From: Epiperipatus broadwayi
Taxonomy: Eukaryota; Animalia; Onychophora
Reading direction: 5' to 3'
Assembly (NCBI GenBank): GCA_028023455.1
Contig: JAQFVV010000010.1
Location: 16,802,001 to 16,866,000 of the forward strand
Length of the DNA stretch: 64,000 nucleotides
Within the stretch, counting starts at the first letter, position 1; each line of letters opens with the position of its first letter. The notes below the pieces were generated by a model, which searched no databases, was not told the origin of the DNA, and saw nothing but the letters and a program-made list of their open reading frames with translations. The position numbers and the translations under genes were made by a program. Below are positions 31,001 through 34,000 of the stretch, in pieces.

Positions 31001-34000
31001 AGAAATTTTGTTCAGTTTTACTGGACAAATATAATCCTTCTCACTCCATTTTTTATGGTTAATAAGTAAATACTTTTAAAATAAAATAAAAAAAATGAAA
31101 AAACTTAGATCTGCATATATGAATGGCAAAACATCAGAGAGAGAGAGAGAGAGAGAGAGAGAAAGAGTGAGTTCAAATTGTTCAGTTCCTTTTATAGTCT
31201 TGTATAACTGACATCATTAAATCTAAGACTATACTCTTTACTTACACTTTTGCTGAAATCACCCTGCATTCCAAATCTATTCTTGGATTTACCAAGACTG
31301 TTTTTCTGACAATGATCTCATTATAACAATTTAATTAAAAGACAAGGTGAAATTTTCTGCTAGGCAAAAAAATAGATTAAATGTGGAACTATAAAGATCT
31401 GAAGGCAGAAGTCAACAACTAACAAGGCTTAAAAATGATCGATGAAAGAAAACTGTAAAAAATATAGACATTTACTGATCATGAACATTCTACATATTTT
31501 TTTGATATATTGAAAGCGATCTATGAACCTGAAAAATGTTACCACAATCTATTAAATTCAACAATGGCATTCTCTTATATGATAACAATTATAGCTGAAA
31601 TACACAGGCTTATATATACCTGCATCTATATATGTAATAGACAGGGTATGAGCACAGACTTTCACATGACCCACCACTCTCCACACCATCTCATAACACT
31701 GATACACCTGAACACACATATGTTGAAAAGATAAATAATCACCAATATACGTATTTCATGCTAAACCAGCAATCATCAGTTGGTCCAGATTACCATCTCT
31801 ACACATATATGCTACAAGTGCTCAGATATATATTAAGATAGCAAATTCTCCTACTTTAATGGACAGGCTTCAATCTACTCCACACTACAACTCTTCAACC
31901 GTCCATCCAATTGAAAATCTGATGATGGAACGCTCAAAGGCCACCCTGAGGCCGAGATTATTGTCACACCCATGTTGACCTAAAGTCAATCTGACCCCTC
32001 ATGTACAGGACATAATCCATTAAATACATATACAAGGGATAGGCAGACATCTCTAATATGTAATAGCTGAAATACACAGGCTTATATATACCTGCATCTA
32101 TATATGTAATAGACAGGGTATGAGCACAGACTTTCACATGACCCACCACTCTCCACACCATCTCATAACACTGATACACCTGAACACACATATGTTGAAA
32201 AGATAAATAATCACCAATATACGTATTTCATGCTAAACCAGCAATCATCAGCCTCAGGGTGGCCTTTGAGCGTTCCATCATCAGATTTTCAATTGGATGG
32301 ACGGTTGAAGAGTTGTAGTGTGGAGTAGATTGAAGCCTGTCCATTAAAGTAGGAGAATTTGCTATCTTAATATATATCTGAGCACTTGTAGCATATATGT
32401 GTAGAGATGGTAATCTGGACCAACTGATGATTGCTGGTTTAGCATGAAATACGTATATTGGTGATTATTTATCTTTTCAACATATGTGTGTTCAGGTGTA
32501 TCAGTGTTATGAGATAGTGTGGAGAGTGGTGGGTCATGTGAAAGTCTGTGCTCATACCCTGTCTATTACATATATAGATGCAGGTATATATAAGCCTGTG
32601 TATTTCAGCTATTACATATTAGAGATGTCTGCCTATCCCTTGTATATGTATTTAATGGATTATGTCCTGTACATGAGGGGTCAGATTGACTTTAGGTCAA
32701 CATGGGTGTGACAATAATCTCAGCCTCAGGGTGGCCTTTGAGCGTTCCATCATCAGATTTTCAATTGGATGGACGGTTGAAGAGTTGTAGTGTGGAGTAG
32801 ATTGAAGCCTGTCCATTAAAGTAGGAGAATTTGCTATCTTAATATATATCTGAGCACTTGTAGCATATATGTGTAGAGATGGTAATCTGGACCAACTGAT
32901 GATTGCTGGTTTAGCATGAAATACGTATATTGGTGATTATTTATCTTTTCAACATATGTGTGTTCAGGTGTATCAGTGTTATGAGATAGTGTGGAGAGTG
33001 GTGGGTCATGTGAAAGTCTGTGCTCATACCCTGTCTATTACATATATAGATGCAGGTATATATAAGCCTGTGTATTTCAGCTATTACATATTAGAGATGT
33101 CTGCCTATCCCTTGTATATGTATTTAATGGATTATGTCCTGTACATGAGGGGTCAGATTGACTTTAGGTCAACATGGGTGTGACAATAATCTCAGCCTCA
33201 GGGTGGCCTTTGAGCGTTCCATCATCAGATTTTCAATTGGATGGACGGTTGAAGAGTTGTAGTGTGGAGTAGATTGAAGCCTGTCCATTAAAGTAGGAGA
33301 ATTTGCTATCTTAATATATATCTGAGCACTTGTAGCATATATGTGTAGAGATGGTAATCTGGACCAACTGATGATTGCTGGTTTAGCATGAAATACGTAT
33401 ATTGGTGATTATTTATCTTTTCAACATATGTGTGTTCAGGTGTATCAGTGTTATGAGATAGTGTGGAGAGTGGTGGGTCATGTGAAAGTCTGTGCTCATA
33501 CCCTGTCTATTACATATATAGATGCAGGTATATATAAGCCTGTGTATTTCAGCTATTACATATTAGAGATGTCTGCCTATCCCTTGTATATGTATTTAAT
33601 GGATTATGTCCTGTACATGAGGGGTCAGATTGACTTTAGGTCAACATGGGTGTGACAATAATCTCGGCCTCAGGGTGGCCTTTGAGCGTTCCATCATCAG
33701 ATTTTCAATTGGATGGACGGTTGAAGAGTTGTAGTGTGGAGTAGATTGAAGCCTGTCCATTAAAGTAGGAGAATTTGCTATCTTAATATATATCTGAGCA
33801 CTTGTAGCATATATGTGTAGAGATGGTAATCTGGACCAACTGATGATTGCTGGTTTAGCATGAAATACGTATATTGGTGATTATTTATCTTTTCAACATA
33901 TGTGTGTTCAGGTGTATCAGTGTTATGAGATGGTGTGGAGAGTGGTGGGTCATGTGAAAGTCTGTGCTCATACCCTGTCTATTAGATAACAATTATATTT

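Follow-up and report, generated by a model that had tools for sequence, protein, structure and literature searches.

Non-long-terminal-repeat (non-LTR) retrozymes have been viewed as non-autonomous derivatives of Penelope-like elements (PLEs) (PMC7229834, PMC7761336, bioRxiv 10.64898/2026.07.22.740005), and their published consensus lengths range from 51 to 972 bp (bioRxiv 10.64898/2026.07.22.740005). A 2020 review described these repeats as lacking a motif that reveals the mobilising machinery (PMC7761336), and their dependence on PLEs has so far been argued from co-occurrence and from the phylogeny of pseudo-LTRs. PLE insertions have their own hallmarks, namely partial tandems, an adjacent inverted 5′-truncated copy, a tail of 30–40 bp often at one end only, and a bias towards microsatellites, and the mechanism that produces them was called undefined by Craig et al. 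(2021, PMC8557442). Here we describe an insert at positions 31594–33984 of a 64,000-nt stretch of Epiperipatus broadwayi DNA, hereafter the window (GCA_028023455.1, JAQFVV010000010.1:16,802,001–16,866,000, forward strand). We put at roughly 80% the probability that this insert is a young copy of a high-copy, non-coding, non-autonomous non-LTR retrozyme, with a minimal type I hammerhead ribozyme (HHR) motif in each 472-bp unit, integrated by the reverse transcriptase (RT) and GIY-YIG endonuclease (EN) of a PLE. The kind is a known one, the animal non-LTR retrozyme, a non-autonomous parasite of PLEs; what goes modestly beyond the literature is the regularity of the two-armed, one-tailed scar that the family leaves and the numerical dominance of a U-U variant adjacent to the ribozyme core.

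The insert is 2,391 bp long and lies between perfect 13-bp direct repeats. With Tandem Repeats Finder the period over 32243–33988 is 472 bp (3.7 copies, 99% identity), and a blastn map resolves the whole into 1.4 minus-strand units (659 bp) placed head-to-head with 3.67 plus-strand units, the two arms forming an inverted repeat of 661 nt that is 100% complementary. The parts are as follows:

31581–31593: target-site duplication (TSD), left copy, 13 bp, GATAACAATTATA
31594–32252, minus strand: minus arm of 1.4 units; outer end at unit position ~152–155 (ragged, “157-type”), inner end at unit position 439
31594–31634, minus strand: one-sided “tail”, unit positions ~112–152, present at this end only
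~32243–32253: head-to-head inner joint with short microhomology (..TCAG..)
32253–33984, plus strand: plus arm of 3.67 units (Tandem Repeats Finder and blastn map); outer end sharp, exactly after CTATTA, at unit position 111
32458–32929, 32930–33401 and 33402–33873, plus strand: three full 472-nt monomers between predicted cleavage sites
33985–33997: TSD, right copy, 13 bp, GATAACAATTATA

A first-pass annotation of this DNA had claimed a 472-bp period, perfect 13-bp TSDs and a non-coding unit, and all three hold, the last in that no open frame longer than 87 aa exists in the unit on either strand (GC content 39%). Its description of about five near-identical units in a single orientation is incorrect, as 31594–32252 is the reverse complement and 32253–33984 is direct. 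The unit had also been called long for such elements, whereas 472 bp falls inside the published range given above.

The architecture of the insert recurs at other loci. We mapped 21 loci, the window and 20 further, of which 16 (including the window) are two-armed, and in all 16 the arms stand head-to-head, the minus arm followed by the plus arm. Each of these insertions terminates on both sides in a sense 3′ end, and a 111-type end is paired with a 157-type end in 14 of the 16, the exceptions (L042 and L043) having one typical end each. The 111-type end is sharp and lies exactly after CTATTA, whereas the 157-type end is ragged (152–158) and follows a second CTATTA, the offset between the two being ~46 bp. 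If the ends had been chosen independently and equally, such a pairing in 14 of 16 would have a probability of 0.5^14, or ~6e-5. The inner joints fall at unrelated unit positions, with overlaps mostly of 0–9 nt (14 and 29 nt, both imperfect, in L033 and L046), and the arms measure 0.9–3.7 units, one-armed arrays reaching 6.3 units. Clear duplications of 11–14 bp are present at about a dozen loci, including a one-armed, 5′-truncated insertion (L048, 13 bp), and five insertions lie inside (TA)n, (TTA)n or (TAA)n microsatellites. Between the insertion ends, none of the 21 loci contains an open reading frame (ORF). The family preserves these scars of integration with unusual clarity, and together the head-to-head arms, the one-sided 46-bp tail, the 11–14-bp duplications and the microsatellite targets support the PLE route directly, on structural grounds.

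Both flanks of the insert in the window (31194–31593 and 33985–34384) belong to an older interspersed repeat, at 72–80% identity and with thousands of candidates genome-wide; the retrozyme here is therefore nested in another repeat. At a paralogous empty site (C30:829849–830597, minus strand) both flanks are joined with exactly one copy of the target, and no allelic empty site was found in the assembly.

PLE coding capacity is abundant in this genome. A profile search for the GIY-YIG domain returned 10,242 candidates, and 150 of the 150 scored were above the Pfam cut-off; the open frames extend up to 901 aa, some of them measuring 800–901 aa, and many stand in head-to-head pairs. At one locus (L061), a 558-aa frame upstream of GIY-YIG gave no direct Pfam match, and a database search aligned it over 93% of its length to RVT_1 proteins of 786–796 aa, one of which has a weak C-terminal GIY-YIG match.

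We propose that reverse transcription would be primed by both nicked target strands on the retrozyme RNA (“twin priming”), at a pair of CUAUUA sites spaced by 46 nt, and that the templates would exceed one unit in length, being either multimers left uncleaved or circles copied repeatedly. Joining of the two cDNAs would follow, through template switching or end joining. If the right arm is transcribed from the plus strand, the RNA could in turn be cut by paired HHRs into 472-nt monomers, with release predicted from 32458–33873, and these would be closed into circles by a host ligase. Five loci carry private variants that are common to every unit on both arms (287A in L041, 127C in L044, 361G in L045, 276T in L047 and 466G in L049), so that, as a rule, one source RNA population gave rise to both arms. 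Consistent differences between the arms are seen in L031 and L040 (264 C,C,C vs. T,T; 219 and 342 G vs. A), and therefore there the inverted arm was not copied from the other arm; two independent primings fit better. A snap-back origin of the inverted arm, i.e., a self-primed hairpin, is excluded for these two loci by the same differences.

The ribozyme assignment begins from the core pattern CUGAUGA, 15 nt, GAAA, 6 nt, UA, which has six matches in the window as compared with 0.01 expected from shuffles. The six motifs, and the parts of the first plus-strand copy (HHR 1), are placed as follows:

32403–32477, plus strand: HHR 1, predicted cut after A32457
32875–32949, plus strand: HHR 2, predicted cut after 32929
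33347–33421, plus strand: HHR 3, predicted cut after 33401
33819–33893, plus strand: HHR 4, predicted cut after 33873
31726–31800, minus strand: the sole complete minus-strand HHR, in the sense of the host gene; core 31746–31779, both stem I strands present by sequence, predicted cut between 31746 and 31745
32198–32251 (motif 32218–32251), minus strand: truncated HHR, beginning at CUGAUGA, without the 5′ strand of stem I
32403–32415 and 32419–32423 with 32458–32476: stem I of HHR 1, with a UGG bulge at 32416–32418
32424–32430, plus strand: CUGAUGA of HHR 1
32432–32435 with 32441–32444: stem II of HHR 1 (UGCU/AGCA), loop GGUUU
32446–32449, plus strand: GAAA of HHR 1
32449–32456: palindrome AUACGUAU of HHR 1, 8 nt, containing A15.1 to U16.1

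The earlier claim of a complete HHR in each unit is thus right for four copies on the plus strand and one on the minus strand and wrong for the truncated minus-strand copy. The cut positions given there, 32457 and 32929, agree with the placement of the core motif as predicted sites, and U-U at positions 10.1/11.1 was read correctly (U at 32431 and U at 32445 in HHR 1). In the proximal part of stem I, ACCAA (32419–32423) pairs with UUGGU (32458–32462), and a longer distal helix lies beyond the UGG bulge; an unconstrained minimum-free-energy fold recovers stem I including the bulge. The palindrome cannot close as a hairpin and would instead pair between two ribozymes. RNAcofold of two HHR copies returned a fully intermolecular duplex, which is uninformative on the active dimer, and the fold of the whole unit is slightly more stable than those of shuffles (z = −1.83).

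In six diverged or decayed copies, 86% of the pair cells are paired, as compared with 36–58% in slid controls, and two pairs are compensated (e.g., A-U to G-C in distal stem I), so that covariation is weak; the pairing is compatible with the HHR structure but weak as proof of it. Leaving aside 10.1/11.1, 71 of the 84 HHR windows listed from the window and the sampled loci retain all core nucleotides and both stems (I and II) intact. The HHR region shows 6 non-CpG substitution events where 12.6 are expected (p = 0.02), a weak indication of constraint.

The genome-wide search for other arrays found many dispersed copies, with at least 228 unit matches at 92–100% identity on many contigs (1,953 candidates, 40 scored). 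At the 21 mapped loci the copies depart from the family consensus at 0.54% of aligned bases, a quarter of these differences being CpG transitions, and the family is young and recently active. The picture drawn in the first-pass annotation, that of a non-coding, recently active HHR retroelement, is upheld; the arrays are dispersed with TSDs at many loci and contain no PLE ORF. A single search of sequencing runs for the unit returned none that is recorded as RNA. In four runs of short contigs of unknown library type, the HHR segment (32414–32477) has 3–100 times the summed depth of the rest of the unit; it is the part of the unit most common to subfamilies, and unit positions ~100–180 are the least common. 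The same runs place the retrozyme family in two organisms and show G at 10.1 to be frequent in related copies and the CpG of the palindrome to decay, and they give no start or end signal at 32457. A solo monomer was also observed (L057:884–1357), from a subfamily with ~90% identity to the unit. With a length of exactly one unit, it is circularly permuted (from position 155 round to 156); a duplication of ~16 bp is present, and the monomer and a PLE 3′ end stand tail-to-tail.

The pair at 10.1/11.1 varies across the genome. Exact matches to a 28-mer of the HHR were counted on both strands of the 5.6-Gb assembly, in which the reversed control pattern has zero matches:

G-C (canonical) at 10.1/11.1: 3,803 exact copies
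G-U at 10.1/11.1: 10,409 exact copies
A-U at 10.1/11.1: 1,434 exact copies
U-U at 10.1/11.1 (the form in the window): 38,854 exact copies, the most numerous

Within one mismatch of the G form, the superfamily numbers 88,418 HHR copies. Because C11.1 forms a CpG with G12, its change to U is ordinary methyl-CpG decay. The ancestral ribozyme was therefore canonical G-C, the U-U subfamily being doubly derived and unpaired at 10.1/11.1, and U-U may weaken the predicted cleavage in the window family. The dominance of U-U poses the question of how much self-cleavage a retrozyme needs, and the family, whose HHR variant has ~39,000 exact copies in the 5.6 Gb of this genome, is a convenient natural data set on the odd tandem and inverted insertions of PLEs. 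A bolder proposal, which we regard as speculative and rather doubtful, joins the two subjects. It holds that the family is a mechanistic handle on the Penelope tail and inverted copies, through priming by both strands on RNA from one source, at CUAUUA motifs that stand 46 nt from each other (the sharp end at 111 and the ragged ends at 152–158), and that U-U outcompetes G-C tenfold since attenuated self-cleavage would leave more multimeric template and so be favoured in mobilisation.

Several observations weigh against reading the insert as a PLE-mobilised hammerhead retrozyme. Among the 12 PLE loci compared, no autonomous PLE shares the HHR or the 3′ end of the unit, and similarity to the unit is found only in nested retrozyme copies (the solo monomer of L057 and an old decayed copy in L059). 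The tail in the unit family, at 46 bp, is slightly above the published 30–40 bp (PMC8557442). The window family carries U-U where G10.1-C11.1 is highly conserved in PLE and metazoan HHRs (Cervera and de la Peña, PMC4209133). Searches with the Rfam covariance models, one of 3.6 kb at E ≤ 1 and one of a 106-nt slice at E ≤ 10, matched no hammerhead family, and other families at chance level only. Such a miss is expected for a minimal, dimer-type HHR whose stem I is open and whose helix III has a “loop” of 2 nt; what carries the HHR call is therefore the motif as checked by hand, together with both stems (I and II), context and conservation across the genome. Finally, nine variants occur in some but not all units of an array, which disfavours a single monomeric circle as the sole template.

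This last point bears on two earlier claims. The near-identity of the units, taken before as a sign of recent activity, is borne out by copies that lie ~0.5% from the consensus and is qualified by the nine variants that differ among units within arrays. As for reverse transcription from a multimer or by rolling round a circle, arms of more than one unit do require a multimeric or circular template, but the array is a head-to-head pair of 5′-truncated arms rather than a simple direct multimer, and a monomeric circle as the sole template is disfavoured. Since the units vary within arrays, the template was not always one monomeric circle; heterogeneous multimers, dimeric circles or template switching are possible. 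Within the window, 59G and 265G are found in the outer part of each arm where covered, and the inner plus arm has 59A/265A. In three loci (L040, L044 and L046) we observed that successive units of an arm carry alternating single-nucleotide variants (T,G,T; G,A,G; T,C,T), a pattern that would match a dimeric template, although the numbers are too small for a conclusion.

The alternative closest to the retrozyme reading keeps the class and the integration route and takes the U-U hammerhead for an attenuated or dead relic, the family spreading in the manner of short interspersed elements from uncleaved read-through multimers, without self-cleavage or circular RNA. We consider it possible but clearly the less probable account. 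The U-U form disrupts a pair that the literature finds highly conserved and is nonetheless the commonest (38,854 vs. 3,803 G-C copies), the minimal HHRs of PLEs are weakly active in vitro (PMC4209133), the units in arrays are heterogeneous, as if genomic multimers had been copied, and the Rfam search stayed without a match. A relic, however, fits poorly with the intact remainder of the core and stems in 71 of 84 HHR windows, with the deficit of non-CpG events in the HHR region (itself weak), and with the HHR segment being the part most common to subfamilies. In addition, arrays copied without circles should shorten in each generation, whereas arms of up to 6 units are common.

The long, perfect inverted arms between duplications would also suit a foldback-type DNA transposon or other hairpin-forming DNA with long terminal inverted repeats built of 472-bp subrepeats. 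This is very improbable, because the two ends are systematically unlike (111 vs. 157), the inner joint and the arm lengths vary at every locus, the duplication length varies between 11 and 14 bp, and no transposase is associated; the one-armed, 5′-truncated insertion with its 13-bp duplication (L048) and the consistent arm differences in L031 and L040 are equally at odds with it. A further set of explanations, to which we give hardly any weight, holds that the insert is a PLE pseudo-LTR or truncated remnant, a satellite expanded by unequal crossing-over, or a palindromic assembly artefact. Palindromes are a known artefact of long reads; here, however, the inversion is limited to the element and never takes in flanking DNA, and it is seen at 16 independent loci, each with a different joint. 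HHRs do occur in PLE pseudo-LTRs (PMC4209133), but at the 21 mapped loci the sequence between the ends is free of ORFs, most of these loci have duplications of their own, and the copies are scattered over many contigs. The pseudo-LTR alternative, which had been raised in the first-pass annotation, is rejected in view of dispersed, TSD-flanked arrays without an internal PLE ORF.

The PLE loci compared with the unit have a hammerhead-like feature of their own. In the 3′ untranslated regions (UTRs) of L051–L062, ~400 nt after the GIY-YIG stop, we observed a motif that resembles an HHR and is conserved, CCTTGAAAATGAYTGTA...ACARTYGAAACRTTGGA, its 5′ core being non-canonical. The motif lies ~110 nt before the point of divergence, which is taken as the 3′ end, and this spacing equals that between HHR and 3′ end in the 472-bp unit; the motif of L051–L062 itself has no sequence similarity to the unit. 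In one of these PLE copies, a tRNA-Gly(TCC) predicted by ARAGORN (L060:1846–1917, minus strand) is inserted antisense in the 3′ UTR, and it is absent from the related L052.

The host region was described before as an intron of a protein kinase C (PKC) gene. Three exon-like frames on the minus strand bear on this claim:

51684–52034, minus strand: exon-like frame with C1 domain, E=0.007, a weak fragment below the Pfam cut-off
37219–37485, minus strand: exon-like frame with a glycine-loop motif, without a Pfam match
24009–24266, minus strand: exon-like frame with protein kinase domain, E=4e-4, a weak fragment below the Pfam cut-off

Since the insert is flanked by minus-strand C1 and kinase-like frames, albeit weak fragments, a PKC-like minus-strand gene with the insert in an intron is a reasonable reading, and the plus arm is antisense to that gene. 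At 31591–33084 the intron contains a 661-bp perfect inverted repeat with a 172-nt spacer. The pre-mRNA would carry one complete sense HHR and a 661-bp perfect hairpin, and this very long double-stranded structure could sequester the sense HHR. Two frames resembling non-LTR retrotransposons lie in the same gene region, one at 58915–61881 on the minus strand (RVT_1, E=2e-29, and Exo_endo_phos, E=2.5e-8) and the other at 8301–9625 on the plus strand (RVT_1, E=8e-17, at 8301–9050).

Compared with PLEs (PMC8557442, PMC4209133), the insertions of this family share partial tandems, an inverted 5′-truncated copy at the 5′ end, a tail at one end only and microsatellite targets, and in the unit as in the PLE 3′ UTRs the HHR precedes the 3′ end by ~110 nt. 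Unlike PLEs, the unit is without an RT/EN ORF and has no detectable similarity to the 12 PLE loci, and those PLEs carry the different, non-canonical HHR-like motif. A second parallel is LINE-1 twin priming, reportedly described by Ostertag and Kazazian in 2001, in which both nicked strands are said to prime, yielding an inverted 5′ segment and a direct 3′ segment with a microhomology joint. Here, in contrast, both outer ends are defined sense 3′ ends at two sites, and the arrangement is found in 16 of 16 two-armed insertions rather than in a minority.

Newt satellite 2, Schistosoma Sm-alpha and the LTR retrozymes of plants (PMC4918200) are tandem repeats whose transcripts self-cleave to monomers, with circular RNA intermediates. 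The plant elements differ from the present family in having type III HHRs, LTRs, primer-binding-site and polypurine-tract motifs, 4-bp duplications and Gypsy machinery, and the classical satellites (newt satellite 2 and Sm-alpha) differ in their canonical G10.1-C11.1. The closest relatives are the metazoan non-LTR retrozymes (PMC7229834, PMC7761336). RNA circles have been demonstrated for these and are a prediction for the window family; their units measure 170–400 nt, slightly below the 472 nt here, and U-U occupies 10.1/11.1 in the present family. The head-to-head arms and the one-sided 46-bp tail are not described for them either, the word “inverted” being absent from PMC7229834. The two share AT-rich tandem units without coding capacity that measure a few hundred bp (GC 39% in the present unit), a type I HHR motif in every unit, whose weak palindromic helix III requires a dimer, TSDs longer than 4 bp, very high copy number, and a proposed dependence on PLEs.

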